The translations under genes were made by a program, and so were the position numbers. Positions 2,021 through 62,120 of a stretch of DNA of 64,000 nt are shown here, one piece after another; within the stretch, counting starts at the first letter, position 1; every line of letters starts with the position of its first letter. Under the pieces are notes generated by a model. It was not told where the DNA came from, did no database searches, and worked only from the letters and a program-made list of their open reading frames with translations. The DNA is taken from positions 62,001 through 126,000 of the IMG/VR virus record IMGVR_UViG_3300021964_009390; one strand, written 5' to 3'.

Positions 2021-2989
2021 ATGAATGTAGGTTTTTTTACACCTGGATTTAACTACCGCGGTACAGGAGTCGCGATATATGATTATGCAAACTACAATGA
2101 AAGTATCTTAGGTAATCAATCGTATATAATATCTTGCGGCACCGGGGCAAGTAGCGACATCCGTCGTAAGTTTGAGGACCGGTTCGGTGACAGAATGCTA
2201 GGGTGTGGTCATTCTAAATCAAAGCTAGAGTCGCATCTGAACGATCATAACATCACTCATCTATACCGGCTTATCGCAGGAACCAAGTGCGAATTCGAAA
2301 ACCCGGATAACCCTAGGGAGCTGAGTACCATGGTCAAGGAGTGTATACATTGTGTTTTCAACGCTAGCGAACCTCATGGTGATGTCTATGCCGCTATATC
2401 AGATCAAGTCAAAGGATATCATGCATCTGTACCGGTAGTACCTCATATGATATCGTTACCCAACGATACACATAATTTGAGAGCAGAACTAAATATACCT
2501 GATACTGCAACAGTATTTGGTGGTTATGGTGGTAAATGTAAATTTAGTATTCAAGCGGCACGAGATGCTGTTTATCAAGTCGCGAAAGCTCGGACTGATA
2601 TATATTTCCTCTTCGCGAATTTTGATAGATTCTGTGAACATTTACCTAACATTATACATGTACCAACTATATACAATGTAGATGATAAAGTGAGTTTCAT
2701 AAACACATGTGACGCGATGCTGTGGGCCCGTAATGATGGAGAAACGTTTGGTATAGCTATTGGTGAATTTTCCTCAAAAAACAAACCGGTGATTGCAAAA
2801 AAATGCGGTAAGTTAGCCCATGCAAACATTTTAAAGAACAAGGGTATATGGTATGAAGGCAAACAGGATTTAATTGATATATTGCACGCGTTTGATAGGT
2901 GCAAATCTGTAACCGGTGACTGGAATGCATATACTGATTATACACCGGAAAAGGTAATAAATATATTTAACAAAGTATTTTTGAAATGA
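2021..2989 (+). CDS. GT-B glycosyltransferase (large-virus type)
   Basis: RGTGVAIYDYA N-terminus; CDAMLWARNDGETFGIAIGEF GT4-like E-x7-E motif. Confidence 0.75.
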   Translation: MNVGFFTPGFNYRGTGVAIYDYANYNESILGNQSYIISCGTGASSDIRRKFEDRFGDRMLGCGHSKSKLESHLNDHNITHLYRLIAGTKCEFENPDNPRELSTMVKECIHCVFNASEPHGDVYAAISDQVKGYHASVPVVPHMISLPNDTHNLRAELNIPDTATVFGGYGGKCKFSIQAARDAVYQVAKARTDIYFLFANFDRFCEHLPNIIHVPTIYNVDDKVSFINTCDAMLWARNDGETFGIAIGEFSSKNKPVIAKKCGKLAHANILKNKGIWYEGKQDLIDILHAFDRCKSVTGDWNAYTDYTPEKVINIFNKVFLK

Positions 2990-3591
2990 TAAACCATGAG
3001 CACAAATGTATTTTTATACATATACCAAAATGTGGTGGGTCTAGTGTTGAACGACATATAGATAACCGAGACTGGTGGGTACATGCCCCGGCGGAGAAAC
3101 ATTTAACCGCCAATGATGCACGGAACAAATATGCGCAATATTGGGATGATTATTTTAAGTTTTCTATAGTACGTAACCCGTATGATATAGAAGTCTCATG
3201 GTACCATTTCAAAAAACACCCATTTATCCATGGACGGGAGATAGGCTTTTCAGAGTTTATCAAAGACGAGAGTATTAACACAGTAGCGAAAATTAGTCAC
3301 GGTCTTACGGACAAAAGATGGGAGAATATTATACCGAGTGTTACCGACTGCTATGAGTATTTGTCTATTGACGATACTATCGCGATGGATTATATCGGTA
3401 AACTCGAAAATATTCGACAAGACTTCAATACAATCTGTGACAAAATAGGGATACCACGGCAACAACTTCTACATGTAAACAAAACAAACCACAAACACTA
3501 CACTGAATACTATGATGATGAAACAAAGCAAATCGTTGCGGAAAAATACGCAAAAGACATTGAGTATTTTGGTTATGAATTTGGAGAATGA
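2986..3591 (+). CDS. Sulfotransferase family 2
   Basis: FIHIPKCGGSS, FSIVRNPYD..VSWY, YIGKLEN, C-terminal HYTEYYDDET..AKDIEYFGY. Confidence 0.9.
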   Translation: MINHEHKCIFIHIPKCGGSSVERHIDNRDWWVHAPAEKHLTANDARNKYAQYWDDYFKFSIVRNPYDIEVSWYHFKKHPFIHGREIGFSEFIKDESINTVAKISHGLTDKRWENIIPSVTDCYEYLSIDDTIAMDYIGKLENIRQDFNTICDKIGIPRQQLLHVNKTNHKHYTEYYDDETKQIVAEKYAKDIEYFGYEFGE

Positions 3592-4895: not shown

Positions 4896-5675
4896 GTGAG
4901 ATATAAGAAGCAGATCGGATATTCCCCTACAAGGACCCACTGGTCCAAGGCGTATTATCATATTGTAATTGATTACCTTGGGGCTCTATATAAATTTATT
5001 GACACAGATTTAACAAATTATAATTTAGTTTTCCATCCATGTTGGAGGAGTAAAAAATTTGCAGAACAGTGGACCAACATTGTTGTACCTGAACTAAAAA
5101 ATTCAGTTGTATATCACAAGAGATTGAAAAATTTAGAAGAATCTATTGTGATTGATTCGAAAATATCAATTGACAGTGATAAAATGCCACATAAACACAA
5201 AGAAAACATTGTTTTATTTTTAAGAAAAAAAGTAAATGATTATCTGATAGGAATAGAAACAAAACAAAATAAAATGCTTTTGATAAAAAGAACAAAAATT
5301 AGGTGTACTAACAACTTTGATGAACTTTTAATTTTATGCAAAAAATATTGTGACAAATTAAATCTTGAACTTGATGTATTTGATGATTCGGAAAATCTTG
5401 GAAGTGTGGGGGAACAATTACAGAGATACAGATCATCAAAAATTGTCATTGGACAGCATGGTGCAGGATTTATTAATTTGCTTGCCTGTCTACGGAACGT
5501 ACATTTTATTGAATTTAAATCAATATGCAGAGGACCCCGTGGGAATAAACAAGATCCAGTGTGCTTTGAGGTAATGGCTAATATATTAGGAATTTCTCAC
5601 CAATGTATACAGAACAACGAAAATCAAGATATTGATTTAAATCAAGTCAATAAATACCTAGAGGAGGTAACATAA
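4896..5675 (+). CDS. Glycosyltransferase family 61 (DUF563)-like
   Basis: YYH near N-terminus; EQLQRYRSSKIVIGQHGAGFINL..HFIEF. Confidence 0.8.
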   Translation: MRYKKQIGYSPTRTHWSKAYYHIVIDYLGALYKFIDTDLTNYNLVFHPCWRSKKFAEQWTNIVVPELKNSVVYHKRLKNLEESIVIDSKISIDSDKMPHKHKENIVLFLRKKVNDYLIGIETKQNKMLLIKRTKIRCTNNFDELLILCKKYCDKLNLELDVFDDSENLGSVGEQLQRYRSSKIVIGQHGAGFINLLACLRNVHFIEFKSICRGPRGNKQDPVCFEVMANILGISHQCIQNNENQDIDLNQVNKYLEEVT

Positions 5676-5744
5676 CTTTGATTGCCGGAAGTTATTTTTA
5701 CAATTCACACTTGTTACGAAGACGATACATTGATTCAGATATAA

Positions 5745-6767
5745 ATGAAATTTCCAATAATGAAAAATAAACATATAATAATTCATGTTGGACCAGCAAA
5801 AACTGGAACATCTGCATTACAATATTTTTTATTAAAAAATCGCGAAGAACTCGAGAAAGCTGGATACTATTATCCGGATCACCGGGTAGATCAAAACGGT
5901 GTAGGTGGAGGTCATGCGAATCCACGTAGATTTAATATTAAAAATATCATAAACAATTTTTTAGAATCAAATTCAAAACATCATACATTAATATTATCAT
6001 CAGAAGACTTCTTCGTAAAGATAAACGAACTCAATAAAATATGCGCAAGTATTAAGTTTGTCTCGTTTTATCGTTGTAGTATTTACCAGTCATTATCCGG
6101 TTATATTCAAAAAATAAAACGTAAAAATCAAACCGATAAATTTAAACGGCACAAAATAGATAGATCGCCTAATGATACCCACCTTGATAATTTGAAAATT
6201 AAAAATATTAATTACACAATAATTCCGTATATGTTCGATTTTGATAACACTTGGTCAATTGTTAATGAATTTTTGAGGTTTATTGATAATAGTAACGTAT
6301 TGAGTCATATGTATGAAAACAAAATAAAAATTGTGAATCCATCATACTGTATAGAGGCAATAGAACTTAAGAGGTTTATTAATAACAATATTAACGATAT
6401 CAACGTTGATAATAATAAATCTACCATACTTGAGTTGGATGTAATACTACAGAAATTTACAGAGGGTGTGAATGATTTTTCTTTTTTAAAAGATGAACAA
6501 TTTGAAGAAAATAAAAAAATAGAAATATTGTTTTTAGAAAATATAATTATAAATTACAAACAACCGCAATTGAAAGTGATTTTAAATCATATGCAAAAAT
6601 CTAAAAATAAAAAATTTATAACACAACAATTATCAAAACAACAAATTGTTAAAATAGTGAAACATATTGCAAATGAGGATATAAACATACTTAAAAATAT
6701 TTTGCCTTATATTTCAAAAGATACGAATAATCCAATATACATAGAGATTAAAAATATTATCGAATGA
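5745..6767 (+). CDS. Sulfotransferase-fold protein
   Basis: IIHVGPAKTGTSALQ, YYP, LILSSEDF; very AT-rich; start could be 5760. Confidence 0.7.
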   Translation: MKFPIMKNKHIIIHVGPAKTGTSALQYFLLKNREELEKAGYYYPDHRVDQNGVGGGHANPRRFNIKNIINNFLESNSKHHTLILSSEDFFVKINELNKICASIKFVSFYRCSIYQSLSGYIQKIKRKNQTDKFKRHKIDRSPNDTHLDNLKIKNINYTIIPYMFDFDNTWSIVNEFLRFIDNSNVLSHMYENKIKIVNPSYCIEAIELKRFINNNINDINVDNNKSTILELDVILQKFTEGVNDFSFLKDEQFEENKKIEILFLENIIINYKQPQLKVILNHMQKSKNKKFITQQLSKQQIVKIVKHIANEDINILKNILPYISKDTNNPIYIEIKNIIE

Positions 6768-6774
6768 TCACAAG

Positions 6775-6861
6775 ATGAAATATTATTATATAAATTTGAG
6801 AAGTTCAACAGAACGCAGTGAGCATATGGAGAGATTGACAGACTATACACTGGTTATGTAG
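6775..6861 (+). pseudogene. Truncated GT25 N-terminal fragment
   Basis: MKYYYINLRSSTERSEHMERL.. resembles the GT25 start (YxINLxxxxxRxxxM); stops after 28 codons. Confidence 0.55.
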
Positions 6862-6987
6862 AACATAGCTACTGCATTAACAACATGATCCTGTGGAGAC
6901 GCAACGTTGAGTCGGATATCAATCGAGTGTCAAGAAAATAATGTAACATGAGTTGCGTAATTGCATGACACACTATATTATATAGGT

Positions 6988-7221
6988 GTGTTTAAAAACA
7001 AAGCAGCATGGCGAGAAGCGATAAGTGACACGGTCATAGGTACCGTAATCAACTTTCCGCTCAACATGCTGGCCATGTGGTTCATATTCAAAGCAGAACT
7101 GACCGTATTGCAATCATCTGCGCTATTGTGGTTCATATTCACCAGCGTGGCTATTGTACGTAAATACTGTTTGAGAGTTTACTTTGAAAAAAAGTCAAAA
7201 GAAATAGTTGACTCAGAATAA
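6988..7221 (+). CDS. Small membrane protein (GtrA-like topology)
   Basis: Two hydrophobic helices; GTG 6 nt after TATTAT of promoter TTGCGT(6953)-17-TATTAT. Confidence 0.7.
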   Translation: MFKNKAAWREAISDTVIGTVINFPLNMLAMWFIFKAELTVLQSSALLWFIFTSVAIVRKYCLRVYFEKKSKEIVDSE

Positions 7222-7277
7222 TAAGCCTATATACTATATAAGTATACGCCGCTGAGGTGGCATCGTTCTTTCACAAT
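7208..7277 (+). promoter_or_regulatory. Promoter followed by a boxB-like hairpin and boxA-like antitermination site
   Basis: TTGACT 7208, TATACT 7230; hairpin GCCGC-TGAG-GTGGC 7248-7261; GTTCTTTCACAAT 7265-7277 resembles rrn boxA GCTCTTTAACAAT. Confidence 0.6.
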
Positions 7278-7291
7278 CAAATCAATTTAAT

Positions 7292-7918
7292 TTATCAGAT
7301 CGACGGATCTGATAATGGGACGCTAGTAGAAGGAGCAACCTTAGCTCCACTAGCACACATGTCCTCGCTGCGGCGGGGGGTCGACGATCTAGTGATTGAG
7401 GCTAGCTGAAGGACAGCGATGTGGATACAATCCATCATGTGGTACATGTCTGCCAACCCTATAACTGAACTATAGGTATGATTCCTGGAGGTGAGCTGTA
7501 AAAGGCAAGGCCTTCCTTTGTCGCATAACAATGGATCTAGGAACATAGTGCGAACAAGATCTCGGTAGTAGAGGCTCAACGATCAAGTGATTCAGAGCGG
7601 GTTAAACACCCATCAAGTTGCAGAATCATTCTGGCGGTAACTAGAGACATGTTGAGAGAAGGCTGAAGAGTAGTCTCTCCCCAATCAATTTCATAAGGTG
7701 GTAACTGCGTAGCGGGCGCTGCCTTTAATTTGAATCCGGAACACCGGCTGTCTGTCACAACCCGCGGGACCCACTATATTAATATCCACGTCGTGTTACA
7801 CAGCAGCCGGTTTCCCCATTTTAACTTTGAGCGACACATGTGGGCCCGGAACGAACCACGGCGAGATAGAGCGCCCGGCAGGAACCGCGCAACCTGAACT
7901 CACGCTCCCTAGGCTCAA
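7292..7918 (+). ncRNA. Candidate large structured ncRNA or ncRNA cluster, family unassigned
   Basis: No credible ORF; more than 12 helices including perfect 10-bp stem 7292-7315, long-range ACATGTCT/AGACATGT, TTCCTGGA/TCTAGGAA, TGATTC/GAATCA, ACCGGCTG/CAGCCGGT, TTGAGC/GCTCAA. Confidence 0.7.
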
Positions 7919-7970
7919 CAATTTAGGTCGAAACACACACACTAATACAAAGAAAGGAAACAAACAAATC

Positions 7971-8177
7971 ATGGCAAGATCTGGATATGAAATACGTCTC
8001 GATGTGCTACGAATGGCAAAAGACCTGGCTGATGACCGATACCATCAGGAGCTGAACCGCCGGCAAGAAATTGCTACCCGGAACAACACTGAATGGTCAT
8101 TACCTAGCGACACAAGAGAGAAAGACTCTCTTAAAATCGCTGACGAGCTTTACGCCTTTGTAGAAGCGAAAGACTAA
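7971..8177 (+). CDS. Conserved small myovirus hypothetical protein (YEIRLxxLxMAK type)
   Basis: RBS AAGAAAGGA upstream of ATG 7971; followed by terminator. Confidence 0.75.
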   Translation: MARSGYEIRLDVLRMAKDLADDRYHQELNRRQEIATRNNTEWSLPSDTREKDSLKIADELYAFVEAKD

Positions 8178-8191
8178 TCGCTCGACGAGCG

Positions 8192-8216
8192 ACCCACCTT
8201 CGGGTGGGTTTTTTTT
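8192..8216 (+). terminator. Rho-independent terminator
   Basis: ACCCACC-TTCG-GGTGGGT followed by T-run. Confidence 0.9.
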
Positions 8217-8251
8217 GTGGAAATTGTAAGAACAAGCATATATAATAAGGT

Positions 8252-8650
8252 ATGAAAATGTTACTCATTATCTCTGTTGCCGCACCAACACTAGCGTTGT
8301 TACTAGGTTACTCCCATCCCGGTACCGACCCTGTCGGGGACCCAACACCCGTGGTTCCCACCAGAGAGGTGGCGGTGTACAAAGTGAACGAGTACAATGT
8401 ACCCAAGAGCGATGTGGTGATCACGGTGAACACTTTCCCGTTTGATGTCGGTGGAAGCCGCCCATTCCAGATCAGTGCTCATGGTAAAAAATATCGGTTC
8501 AAACCAGAAGACGTTCGTGAGTTTCTCAAAAAAGGTGTGCAGATGGACATCCCTAGCGAGCCTCTACCCACCGGAACCTGGATAGGTCCATTTCCTTTTG
8601 TTGGAGACATGTCCAAGCAAATCAAACCGGTACGACTCAACATCAACTGA
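8252..8650 (+). CDS. Hypothetical secreted or membrane-anchored protein
   Basis: Hydrophobic N-terminus, Pro-rich linker. Confidence 0.65.
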   Translation: MKMLLIISVAAPTLALLLGYSHPGTDPVGDPTPVVPTREVAVYKVNEYNVPKSDVVITVNTFPFDVGGSRPFQISAHGKKYRFKPEDVREFLKKGVQMDIPSEPLPTGTWIGPFPFVGDMSKQIKPVRLNIN

Positions 8651-8660
8651 CCCACACGCA

Positions 8661-8736
8661 CAGGCCGAGTGGCGGAACTGGTAGACGCTGCATCGACCAC
8701 CATACATCGGCAACAGCGCGTAGCGCTCTCAGCCTG
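8661..8736 (+). ncRNA. tRNA-like element (Leu-type D-arm; non-canonical anticodon and T arms)
   Basis: GGCCGAG-TG-GCGGAACTGGTAGACGC; outer stem CAGGCCGAG/CTCAGCCTG; no TTCG T-loop, no CCA. Confidence 0.45.
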
Positions 8737-60900: not shown

Positions 60901-62120
60901 TTGTAATCTCGTTGCTGATGTCCAGATTCTCCGCTCCATAAGTTTTGTGTACTCAATCTTTCTTTACCTGTCAATTGATTTTTGAGTGTCAACATATTTA
61001 CTGGTAGGGAATTTCCAGTTAGATAATAATATTCAGAATGTAACAAATGATTACTGAGCAATCCTTGGGTCGAGGTGTTTGTATTTACATTCAAATTGCT
61101 CAAATCATTGGATTGCTCATAGTTTACAATTTTAGAATCTAACCTAACATCACTTAATTTTGTTGTCGGTGGTCTAACACGCATGGCAGTCCGGTCTGTG
61201 AGTTCCAGTACGTTAGGGTAATTAGTGTCAATATCAAAATCGCTCCCGGGATCTGAGACATGATATTCCGGGAGTATAGTTGTCAATCGTAATGGTGGTA
61301 CCCCTGCGAACGCTGGTTTGGCGCGGTCTTCATCCGATATTAACTCCACAATTTTCATTTTCGAAAAATGTTCCTTGTATAATCGTATGATATTATGATC
61401 TCTGTAGTATGTATATTTAAATAAGTGTCGTTCATCAGAAAATAGTGCAATGATTTCCTCCGGGTCATGTTCTAGACCCGGTTCCAATACACCTTCTTCA
61501 AATTGCAGTTCTGCTGATCCATCGTCTCTATGACATAAATAGTATCTAGATTCACCATCCACGTGACTCACAACACAATCAACACCGTTTATAAAAGTTA
61601 TATTGAAGTAAAATTTTTGTTCTAGAGTGTCTCTCAATTTAGCTCCAATAAATTTTTCAGCGCTTAATTTTTTTGTCACGGTAGTGAGGTCTGCCCCAGT
61701 AGATCTTCCGGTTTGGTCTGTCAATATAGTCAAATATTCTGACACTGTATCATCTTCAGCAAGAGCACTCACCGCGCTAGCAGCGGTCAAACAAGTTTCT
61801 CCACTCAAAGCGCTCAAGCCACTCAATGGATCGTTGTTCAGTCTATTGAATGCTAAATATGTTGAAATCGTCTCCGGGTATTCATCCGGTAGTGGTTTTA
61901 ATCTAATTATATCAGATATTTTATGCTGATCTGTAAGATAAAAATTGGTAAACTTGTTAAAAGTAATGTCGTTAGTGTTGTTGAGCCCACTATGATATTT
62001 AAACGAAATACCTTGTTCAAATGAAATTGGTTCATGTATAACCTCAATAGTAGGGTCTAATCGATAGTCCAGCTGCAACGGAGGCATGACCTGTATACCA
62101 TCTATTGTGTTTGATTGCAT
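57966..62120 (-). CDS. Large baseplate/virion protein with LamG-like and propeller-like segments
   Basis: 1384 aa; HNI.VN.N...G..EVYIDG; late promoter. Confidence 0.65.
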   Translation of the reverse strand: MQSNTIDGIQVMPPLQLDYRLDPTIEVIHEPISFEQGISFKYHSGLNNTNDITFNKFTNFYLTDQHKISDIIRLKPLPDEYPETISTYLAFNRLNNDPLSGLSALSGETCLTAASAVSALAEDDTVSEYLTILTDQTGRSTGADLTTVTKKLSAEKFIGAKLRDTLEQKFYFNITFINGVDCVVSHVDGESRYYLCHRDDGSAELQFEEGVLEPGLEHDPEEIIALFSDERHLFKYTYYRDHNIIRLYKEHFSKMKIVELISDEDRAKPAFAGVPPLRLTTILPEYHVSDPGSDFDIDTNYPNVLELTDRTAMRVRPPTTKLSDVRLDSKIVNYEQSNDLSNLNVNTNTSTQGLLSNHLLHSEYYYLTGNSLPVNMLTLKNQLTGKERLSTQNLWSGESGHQQRDYNKLFTGTNQLQGADRIYFDYTVKQFEIEFRSGMNYFNTPQNMDPVKRLNINDSKLYECGAIGSDNPSRSDKIYKQRANYSDTTRWGDPTDEHTGTWLCTWLSAGDDPSVQPVWVDRYYNPSTSSYISALTSVSDPHNTYTSVQADAIFARGDGVYDKTSDLTLEPGCMYAYYRVSSRDMVNNLKQFDPVYIQKGLDEYTSTTNLPKTITNDNQEYVLDGSTYGKIKNTKQLGNEMGTELSIAFDINIKNWQSPVGHQLFGNYTNSGIGLFNTNDVSPFVFVLGSDGTSVGQVTQNTSIRIYDKKFKLYNYVTNNGHLKDTDTPGYFVDIVVREFPDNIYALLSTGDILEIDHDGVVLASYNSWNKHYGTGFTNTISDLTYDNRYIYILTHTGTGEHDYDINTFDMVNKTFTVNSTVCQVAIPVPDEFIDNSVYDYGRGIKSGPPNLLTVKDDPPPYQHTRNIYVGYGDSIKVGDDTLWIHVKGLRDSLSGFQTKHDAVYGLDIKTLQLLPGKMYDTGVEDTNLKLSVQDYTVDTADNLWVIHSGNVLSKFTKNRDIISTQILDEREVMSIVITRSFESGDIVENLLVLSRSIGGEELGVQIGPSSHPTALLNGRAYRKASGWYQSGTFYSRPTTTAEIVNYDTDDETVPFDDTQHIIYPFIEGDSRFGTHVQDIDTIVSTDRTGIVLNDDYSALTEDFDYLVTEVDDTIFVENIDPVTNKIVDTIQLPTLTVTDINNFPSMITSHAYTKNNFEKYHKHGLNLKMLLQPKFAAAEPDLVNLKIDLSEWNSNLPYTGYHNICVNINNNTGRVEVYIDGHLNETDNVYTFEPGKYTFNNMFTRELLVGASPYLNETTVQSKIKNYTTYTTRDTCVKNINIVNKCLTRADIVCLMLSYSEVDDIKWALPNGLRNLIEGVDQVFNHSLPPRKSNNFNMNVRNSEIKSTQLQQYITNKLRKTLDQITPAGTKIVGVNWYNEILD

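Follow-up and report, generated by a model that had tools for sequence, protein, structure and literature searches.

A large structured RNA gene, new to Rfam, in a marine jumbo phage and its relatives

The stretch of DNA analysed here (in the following, the window) comprises 64,000 nucleotides, positions 62,001 to 126,000 of the 222,461-bp contig IMGVR_UViG_3300021964_009390 of an uncultivated virus. The region 7208-7830 of the window is a genuine gene for a large structured RNA, encoded on the + strand and non-coding, that is new to Rfam; the RNA occurs widely in marine phage contigs, and its core is highly represented in marine RNA libraries. The RNA is likely a stand-alone, stable and trans-acting species made under Nus-type anti-termination; of this reading, the binding of Nus factors, the trimming of the transcript and the role in trans are inferred.

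Very few large RNAs with an intricate fold have been described from bacteria and phages, and RNase P, tmRNA, OLE, ROOL, GOLLD and manA each opened new biochemistry, the latest being RNA-only cages. The RNA described here has no counterpart in Rfam 15 or in the deposited phage genomes searched. It is widespread in ocean metagenomes, and in ocean metatranscriptomes few sequences at its locus are covered as deeply.

Locus, homologues and covariation

The source phage is a marine jumbo phage; its contig carries phage baseplate, ribonucleotide reductase and helicase-like genes as well as two tRNAs. A gene-free gap at 7222-7970 was verified, flanked by an 86-aa ORF of membrane type (DUF7220; 6961-7221) and a 68-aa ORF (7971-8177), and a gene for a DnaB/RadA-like ATPase is located 870 nt downstream. 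The part of the gap at 7822-7970 (+ strand) represents the upstream region and leader of the 68-aa gene and is outside the RNA unit. In 50,697 deposited phage records, blastn and megablast detected no DNA-level matches to the RNA region or to 21 kb of the genome.

Homologues were reached by a protein search with the 68-aa product, which yielded 33 relatives and, through these, their contigs; many of them have gene-free gaps of 590-900 nt upstream of the 68-aa homologue. The gaps of a first contig set aligned to 7203-7824 of the window in nhmmer searches (E 1e-123 to 1e-146), and a profile made from this set detected more distant relatives at E 1e-129 to 1e-171. Conservation of the RNA by far exceeds that of the neighbouring proteins: E values for the RNA are still 1e-129 to 1e-162 in phages whose adjacent 68-aa protein has an identity of just 44-53%. 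With an invariant 21-mer of the core, 50 contigs from marine metagenomes and one more from IMG/VR were retrieved, and more than 50 homologous copies are present in marine metagenomes. Exact matches to the same 21-mer are absent from 185,579 bacterial and archaeal species genomes, which provided no clue to a host or prophage. A degenerate pattern for the 3' end was also run against IMG/VR and was discarded, its matches being mostly chance matches in coding sequence. The closest IMG/VR relative (68-aa gene at 85% identity) is without the RNA and has two ORFs upstream instead; its similarity to the window starts about 75 nt before the start codon of the 68-aa gene, near 7892.

The homologues show a covariation-supported fold of a + strand RNA. 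For 33 unique full-length copies, 97.3% of the cells at 173 predicted pairs are canonical, compared to 36-44% in slid controls (pairing partners moved by 1-3 columns), and 53 pairs are changed on both sides, compared to 8-19 in the controls. For the 3' domain (7442-7691), 43 distinct sequences gave 99.3% paired cells (41-50% when slid) and 11 pairs changed on both sides (0-2 when slid); the covariation score of this domain is 0.142 versus 0.017-0.036 for slid controls, and none of 500 shuffles reached the observed value. A consensus fold from 11 sequences contains 137 pairs, of which 29 have compensatory changes. Folding of the single sequence (+ strand, -160.8 kcal/mol, z -2.5; - strand, z -0.9) was moderately better than for shuffled sequences, which is suggestive, not decisive; hence, the structure is established because of the homologues and not because of folding energy. 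The + strand is fixed by the many G-U pairs that never vary, and is favoured also by the folding z-scores. Much of the core is invariant, and helices in these parts therefore rest on prediction only.

Architecture of the RNA unit

The unit begins with a sigma-70-type promoter (TTGACT-16-TATACT, 7208-7235, + strand; 10 of 12 consensus positions), which overlaps the end of the upstream DUF7220 gene and is kept in relatives, with the -35 element invariant and the -10 element reading TATAAT. The layout that follows resembles that of an rrn leader: the -10 element ends at 7235, a hairpin is positioned at 7248-7261, a boxA-like element starts at 7265, and a long untranslated transcript is headed by these. 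The hairpin (+ strand, conserved UGAG loop) takes the place of boxB in rrn leaders, and four of its six pairs covary, with GCCGC/GUGGC replaced by ACCGA/UCGGU or GCUGA/UCAGC in relatives.

The boxA-like element GTTCTTTCACA (7265-7275, + strand) is located 4 nt past the hairpin that covaries, at a distance of about 25 nt to the predicted transcript start. It matches the gamma-proteobacterial consensus GYTCTTTAANA, which was the standard of comparison, at 10 of 11 positions including the critical C4; at position 8, the A of the consensus is replaced by C, and by T or G in relatives. The element is conserved in all full-length homologues, with a single substitution in one lineage. The pattern alone is no rarer than expected by chance in the window (3 matches, 1.4 expected); the boxA reading carries weight because of the position of the element, its conservation, and the recurrence of the design in a second RNA family of other phages, which is also headed by a hairpin and a boxA (GATCTTTGAAA or GTTCTTTGAAA), and not because of pattern rarity. 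The assignment of GTTCTTTCACA as boxA is thus supported at the level of sequence only, and is inferred, with no Nus-binding data. A further leader hairpin, H1 (7292-7315, + strand; TTATCAGATC/GATCTGATAA, GACG loop), is positioned just before the core and has nine of ten pairs covarying; its metatranscriptome depth is low next to that of the core.

The core comprises 368 nt (7316-7683, + strand) with a mean column identity of 89% in the 33 unique copies, and is closed by helix P1 (7316-7319 with 7680-7683). P1 covaries (G-C to A-U in L120 and L141), and in relatives of the L097 type one pair is deleted on both strands. Enclosed by P1, on the + strand, are the hairpin P2' (7322-7354; GCTAGT..GGAGC/GCTCC..ACTAGC), the multi-hairpin domain P3' (7356-7441), closed by CACATG/CATGTG at 7356-61/7436-41, the large multibranch domain P4' (7444-7652), and a terminal hairpin (7654-7679), which directly abuts the 3' strand of P1 at 7680-7683. 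Compensatory changes were found for P2', for the helix closing P3', and for GCT/AGT inside the terminal hairpin. P4' is closed by the long-range helix ACATGTCT/AGACATGT (7444-51/7645-52, + strand), again with compensatory changes, and by 7452-55/7632-35; a second long-range helix of the + strand, ATGATTC/GAATCAT (7478-84/7623-29), reads ATGTCTC/GAGACAT in relatives. In addition, the helix CCTATA/TATAGG is backed by compensatory changes, and a CCTCGC-TGCG-GCGGGG hairpin covaries.

One hairpin module, CGATC-NAGT-GATTG on a 4-bp base, is present twice on the + strand of the core, a repeat that is seen directly in the sequence. Copy 1 (7379-7403) is near-invariant; the nearly identical copy 2 (7574-7598) contains the 21-mer that was used for retrieval of homologues, and each of its helix pairs is of one pair type across the 33 copies, with 3% non-canonical cells. 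A pairing of the P2' loop (ACCUUA) with UAAGGU at 7694-7699 was considered and dropped, since it is not kept in relatives. A search for pseudoknots by pairwise covariation gave nothing usable, the signal being swamped by clade-linked substitutions.

The core is followed by two trailer hairpins on the + strand. Hairpin M1 (7695-7725; AAGGTGGT/GCTGCCTT) has a T-rich tail, is terminator-like and appeared in the list from the terminator scan; three of its pairs covary (AAGGUGGU/GCUGCCUU to AGAGCGGU/GCUGCUCU in relatives), and it is missing in the L097-type relatives. The long hairpin M2 (7744-7810, stem 7744-55/7800-10) is followed by a T-rich tract; its 12-bp stem is wholly rewritten between lineages, with 10 of the 12 pairs covarying, and its loop of about 44 nt is nearly invariant and contains a CCCGCGGG palindrome as well as a promoter-like -35/-10 pair (7752-7780). 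M2 is skipped in the transcript contig of one relative. Conservation extends to about 7824. For the motif CACTATATTA, which is repeated at 6971 and 7773, a grouping as a family was not supported.

Several helices of the original prediction, which had been proposed without homologues, were confirmed: the hairpin at 7248-7261, TTATCAGATC/GATCTGATAA, GCTAGT..GGAGC/GCTCC..ACTAGC, CACATG/CATGTG, CCTATA/TATAGG, ACATGTCT/AGACATGT and AAGGTGGT/GCTGCCTT held, and for a proposed AGGCT/AGTCT helix the GCT/AGT part was confirmed inside the last core hairpin. Three others were corrected or left unresolved. GAATCA had been paired with a nearby TGATTC, and the segment GAATCAT (7623-29) pairs long-range with ATGATTC (7478-84) instead; GTCCT/AGGAC is not kept, and the CCTCGC-TGCG-GCGGGG hairpin covaries instead. 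The helix TTCCTGGA/TCTAGGAA fits the sequences, yet it competes with two other consensus helices.

Expression, genomic neighbours and rival readings

The RNA is represented in 24 marine metatranscriptome runs from many studies, in which 19-30% of the sampled words were found, these being the conserved core. Contigs of four runs were placed on 6700-8700 and their word depth was summed: the depth over 7303-7704 peaks at about 26,000, 1,200, 344 and 15, the flanking genes have depths of 0-70 in the same placement, and the leader (7236-7302) and trailer (7705-7838) are low compared to the core. Within the same run, long contigs with neighbouring genes have depths of 8-110, and core contigs 400-2,100 each. 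These values stem from the word depths that the assembler assigned to contigs, with related phages added together, and the core-to-flank ratio is inflated, since the core is better conserved than the flanks. The transcript contig of one relative extends past the core into the region upstream of the 68-aa gene, and therefore some read-through occurs. The evidence favours the P1-closed core as the stable and abundant species, with the transcript ends unmapped.

Of all neighbours, the DUF7220 gene that directly precedes the RNA is the most constant. In only about one quarter of the metagenome loci, many of them short contigs, was the 68-aa gene detected downstream, and in some phages one or two ORFs are inserted between the RNA and the 68-aa gene; some loci have the helicase-like gene 5 kb upstream instead. 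In one locus (L158) a tRNA-Trp gene begins 3 nt after the RNA unit, and in others a tRNA-Asp gene is located some 150-680 nt downstream of the RNA.

No catalogued RNA was recognised. At gathering thresholds, Rfam 15 identified two distant tRNAs only in the whole window, a permissive scan of 7150-8000 (E up to 10) gave no match, and scans of five relatives (for manA to E up to 5) gave nothing relevant. There is no covariance-model match in the window or the five relatives to ROOL, GOLLD, OLE, HEARO, raiA, IMES or other large Rfam RNAs, and tRNA, tmRNA, RNase P RNA, 6S RNA and group I/II introns were not recognised by ARAGORN and Rfam (scope for tRNA and tmRNA, 7200-7830). No prior description was found in the literature searched on DUF7220, boxA-led phage RNAs and abundant marine phage RNAs.

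The remaining claims of the original prediction can be judged on these data. The gap at 7222-7970 and the promoter at 7208-7235 held, as did the + strand (by the invariant G-U pairs and the folding z-scores) and a structured RNA of at least 430 nt (by covariation), with the conserved unit being longer, to about 7824. Of the proposed boxB/boxA-type signal, the hairpin held by covariation and the boxA at the level of sequence only. That the RNA is stable is supported by the high depth in many marine metatranscriptomes, where the abundant part is the 368-nt core, and a possibly new class survives, with no match in Rfam 15. In short, of the checks by Rfam scan, homologue covariation and metatranscriptome coverage, the first gave no match, the second found covariation, and the third found the core deeply covered.

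A different RNA, of about 330 nt, is encoded at the same site in phages whose 68-aa homologue is 35-41% identical, with 29 of 89 pairs compensated in seven sequences. Two members (L070 and L071) are located inside tRNA arrays, without the 68-aa gene, and in a further phage (L017) the equivalent gap contains a tmRNA and tRNAs, the tmRNA immediately preceding the homologue of the 68-aa gene. Against the Rfam manA model, L071 and L070 gave full-length, sub-threshold matches of 30.1 and 22 bits (gathering threshold 55.2). A covariance model of the 330-nt family scored the window at 4.9 bits, i.e. below detection, and detected no window-type locus, and nhmmer gave no detection between the family and the window. 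Conversely, a covariance model for the window type, built on the 3' domain and not on the full core, placed its best match on the terminal hairpin, closing strand and tail in seven of eight members of the 330-nt family; the cross-matches are 10-13 bits (E 0.01-0.1), except for L070, where the module scores 9.9 bits, one rank below an off-target match. Hence, what both RNAs have in common is the position, the design of the leader, the overall topology and a 3' module of about 40 nt, and the rest cannot be aligned. Common ancestry of both RNAs, and with it a link of the window RNA to manA, is conceivable and remains unproven.

Three alternatives to a new stand-alone RNA were weighed. The reading that the region is not an RNA gene at all, i.e. 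a decayed protein gene, a gene for a small protein on either strand, or a DNA element such as a replication origin, can point to mechanical ORFs of 50-95 aa on both strands, to the DnaB/RadA-like ATPase gene downstream, and to the palindrome in the loop of the last hairpin. However, these ORFs are unconserved, with no reading frame conserved across the 33 homologues; variable sites are distributed over the codon positions without bias (39/34/32), indels are not multiples of three, and the compensatory changes and invariant G-U pairs are sensible only for a + strand RNA, which is moreover covered at high depth in metatranscriptomes. The protein-coding and replication-origin readings were rejected on the ORF and codon analysis and the covariation data, and this alternative is all but ruled out. 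A cis-acting 5' leader of the downstream operon (the 68-aa gene, the helicase-like gene and others) would be either a very large riboswitch or an element for processive anti-termination like lambda nut, HK022 put or Bacillus EAR, whose boxA would modify RNA polymerase for the benefit of the downstream genes and not of the RNA itself. In favour of it, the RNA shares its strand with the downstream genes and, in the window as in several relatives, immediately precedes the 68-aa gene, the transcript contig of one relative links the core with the upstream region of this gene, and boxA elements serve operons in lambda and at suhB. Against it, most metagenome loci are without the 68-aa gene downstream, and elsewhere ORFs or a tRNA intervene; two terminator-like hairpins and a promoter-like element are positioned between RNA and gene; the depth of the core exceeds that of the gene by one to three orders of magnitude; and, to our knowledge, no anti-termination RNA approaches the size of the near-invariant 368-nt core. 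A cis-leader is thus considered improbable.

The third alternative, which we cannot dismiss, is that the window RNA is a greatly expanded and very divergent member of manA (RF01745), and would share its self-assembling core fold. It is supported by the syntenic 330-nt RNA upstream of the same gene family with its full-length, sub-threshold manA matches, by the hairpin and boxA-like motif with which both RNAs begin, by the common order of terminal hairpin, 3' strand of the closing helix and A/T-rich tail with which both end, and by the weak preference (10-13 bits) of the window-type 3' domain model for this module in the 330-nt members. On the other hand, the Rfam model yields no match for the window or for five relatives even with E relaxed to 5-10, the model of the 330-nt family and nhmmer miss the window type, the inner domains are unalignable and differ in branching, the core has 368 nt compared to about 190 for manA, and the manA link of the 330-nt family is itself below threshold. 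A one-helix junction with an abutting last hairpin is seen in the window core, an arrangement too unspecific to prove homology. The junction nucleotides of manA (GUGaCUGAAUAA after the closing helix, UAAgG after the first hairpin) align in L071 and have no equivalent in the window core on reading of the sequence. Further, manA RNAs have been proposed as riboswitches (Weinberg 2010; PMC2864571), and a manA-like placement in a 5' UTR is not met by the window RNA: its downstream genes vary, ORFs or a tRNA are inserted, and it has terminator-like hairpins of its own.

Proposed role and comparison with known systems

For the preferred reading, a stand-alone RNA acting in trans, the following sequence of events is proposed. 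The conserved promoter of the RNA would yield a transcript with the core and the leader and trailer hairpins. The hairpin and boxA-like element may recruit host NusB/NusE and other Nus factors as in rRNA operons, and these would shield the long untranslated transcript from Rho and aid its folding during transcription; both steps are inferred. Leader and trailer would then be trimmed to leave the P1-closed core as the stable species, which is likewise an inference as the ends are unmapped. By analogy to ROOL, GOLLD and manA, the core may be a trans-acting RNA machine or scaffold that works by itself or together with partners, with its near-invariant loops and duplicated hairpin module as putative contact surfaces. 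If true, a phage would here have co-opted the rRNA-type boxA system for the production of a non-coding RNA.

A bolder reading is that the RNA is the founding member of an undescribed class of large phage RNAs, and not a variant of manA or of any catalogued RNA: a core of about 370 nt, conserved nearly base for base across diverged marine jumbo phages, Nus-anti-terminated in the manner of rRNA, very abundant in infection, and with its own kind of activity, e.g. self-assembly into a particle, catalysis as a ribozyme, or action as a decoy of some conserved machine of the host. Taken as a whole, this reading could as readily prove wrong as right. The 368-nt core provides a well-defined construct for cryo-EM, chemical probing and pull-down.

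Among known systems, manA RNAs form closed assemblies of 8, 10 and 60 subunits (cryo-EM; bioRxiv 10.64898/2026.07.01.735769). The window RNA resembles them in being marine and phage-borne, in its multi-stem junction with a single closing helix, and in a terminal hairpin whose loop has an AGUAAUC-type segment on its 3' side and which runs straight into the closing strand; it differs in a core twice as long with other inner domains, in its own promoter and boxA leader, and in not being the 5' UTR of metabolic genes.

The RNA meets the traits of the large ornate phage RNAs, i.e. it is phage-encoded, several hundred nucleotides in length, abundant as a transcript, and has a complex fold supported by covariation. 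ROOL and GOLLD, phage RNAs that often occur near tRNA islands and form cages (bioRxiv 10.1101/2024.12.08.627333), share with it the size, the elaborate conserved structure, the high abundance, the absence of a known protein partner, and the frequent proximity of tRNA genes (L158 for the window RNA; L070 and L071 for the 330-nt family). In contrast, the window RNA has no sequence or structure match in Rfam 15 and is found in marine jumbo phages, whereas ROOL and GOLLD are found in Lactobacillales or rumen phages; neither is known to have a boxA leader.

The likeness to rrn leaders (bioRxiv 10.1101/091223; PMC4807359) consists in a promoter-proximal hairpin and, within 4 nt, a boxA-like element with a 10/11 match, and in the kind of transcript that these lead, which is long, untranslated, highly structured and highly expressed and has a leader under-represented relative to the mature part; the differences are that the product is not rRNA, that position 8 is C and not A, and that no boxC was identified. 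Finally, phage tmRNA/tRNA clusters compare through the neighbourhood: no such features are present at 7200-7830 itself, and related phages have tRNA arrays and a tmRNA gene in the same neighbourhood, and therefore the locus points to a dedication to stable RNAs.

Genes and signals flanking the RNA gene

Just upstream of the gene for the large structured RNA, window positions 4896-6800 form a low-GC island (18-30% GC versus about 45% in the surroundings), in which a Glyco_transf_61 gene occupies 4896-5675 and an ORF of 340 aa, without a family match, occupies 5745-6767. At this position, the related phages bear other glycosyl-, sulfo- and methyl-transferase genes; because the transferase genes differ among relatives, the island has the look of an exchangeable sugar-modification cassette.

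The ORF directly upstream of the RNA gene (DUF7220; 6961-7221) was called mechanically, and its first codons contain an AT-rich inverted repeat without mismatches, ACACAC TATATTATATA GGTGTGT (6969-6992); this repeat might act as a terminator or an operator. A second copy of the repeat was suspected near position 7773, and was not upheld on checking.

Downstream, two signals lie behind the 68-aa gene in the interval 8191-8246: an intrinsic terminator, strong, with 8 bp and a T7 tail, and directly after it a new promoter-like site (8218-8246). The 68-aa gene therefore forms a small transcription unit of its own.

The trailer hairpin

The stem of the trailer hairpin (7744-7810) is wholly rewritten from lineage to lineage, and its loop of approximately 44 nt is nearly invariant; within the loop lie the palindrome CCCGCGGG and, at 7752-7780, a pair of -35/-10-like elements. 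The transcript contig of one relative omits positions 7720-7828 entirely. Three roles are conceivable for the hairpin: it may terminate transcription, serve the next gene as a promoter/operator, or represent a small RNA in its own right.

RNA elements at related loci

In one metagenome copy of the RNA (L111), some 50 nt within the P3' domain are duplicated in inverted orientation (505-560), which is most likely an assembly artefact; this copy was therefore excluded from the RNA statistics.

In another lineage (L038, L040 and L041), a gene-free gap of 702 nt (2299-3000) lies upstream of the homologue of the 68-aa gene; neither of the two RNA families (i.e. the large RNA and the syntenic RNA of ~330 nt found at the same site in distant phages), no boxA-like motif and no Rfam hit was detected in this gap, so that a third element, unrelated to the other two, may be present there.

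Dense tRNA arrays are located near the homologue of the 68-aa gene in related phages, as is tmRNA (L017, 2527-2840, 136.6 bits; L009, 3369-3812, 105 bits). In L017, the gap that holds the structured RNA in other phages is filled by the tmRNA and a tRNA.

A segment of 80 nt (L008, 2595-2674) from the syntenic family of ~330-nt RNAs shares 78% identity with a stretch of two 735-kb records of uncultured huge phages (LR756501 and LR756503), and on the basis of this match related RNAs might also exist in megaphages.
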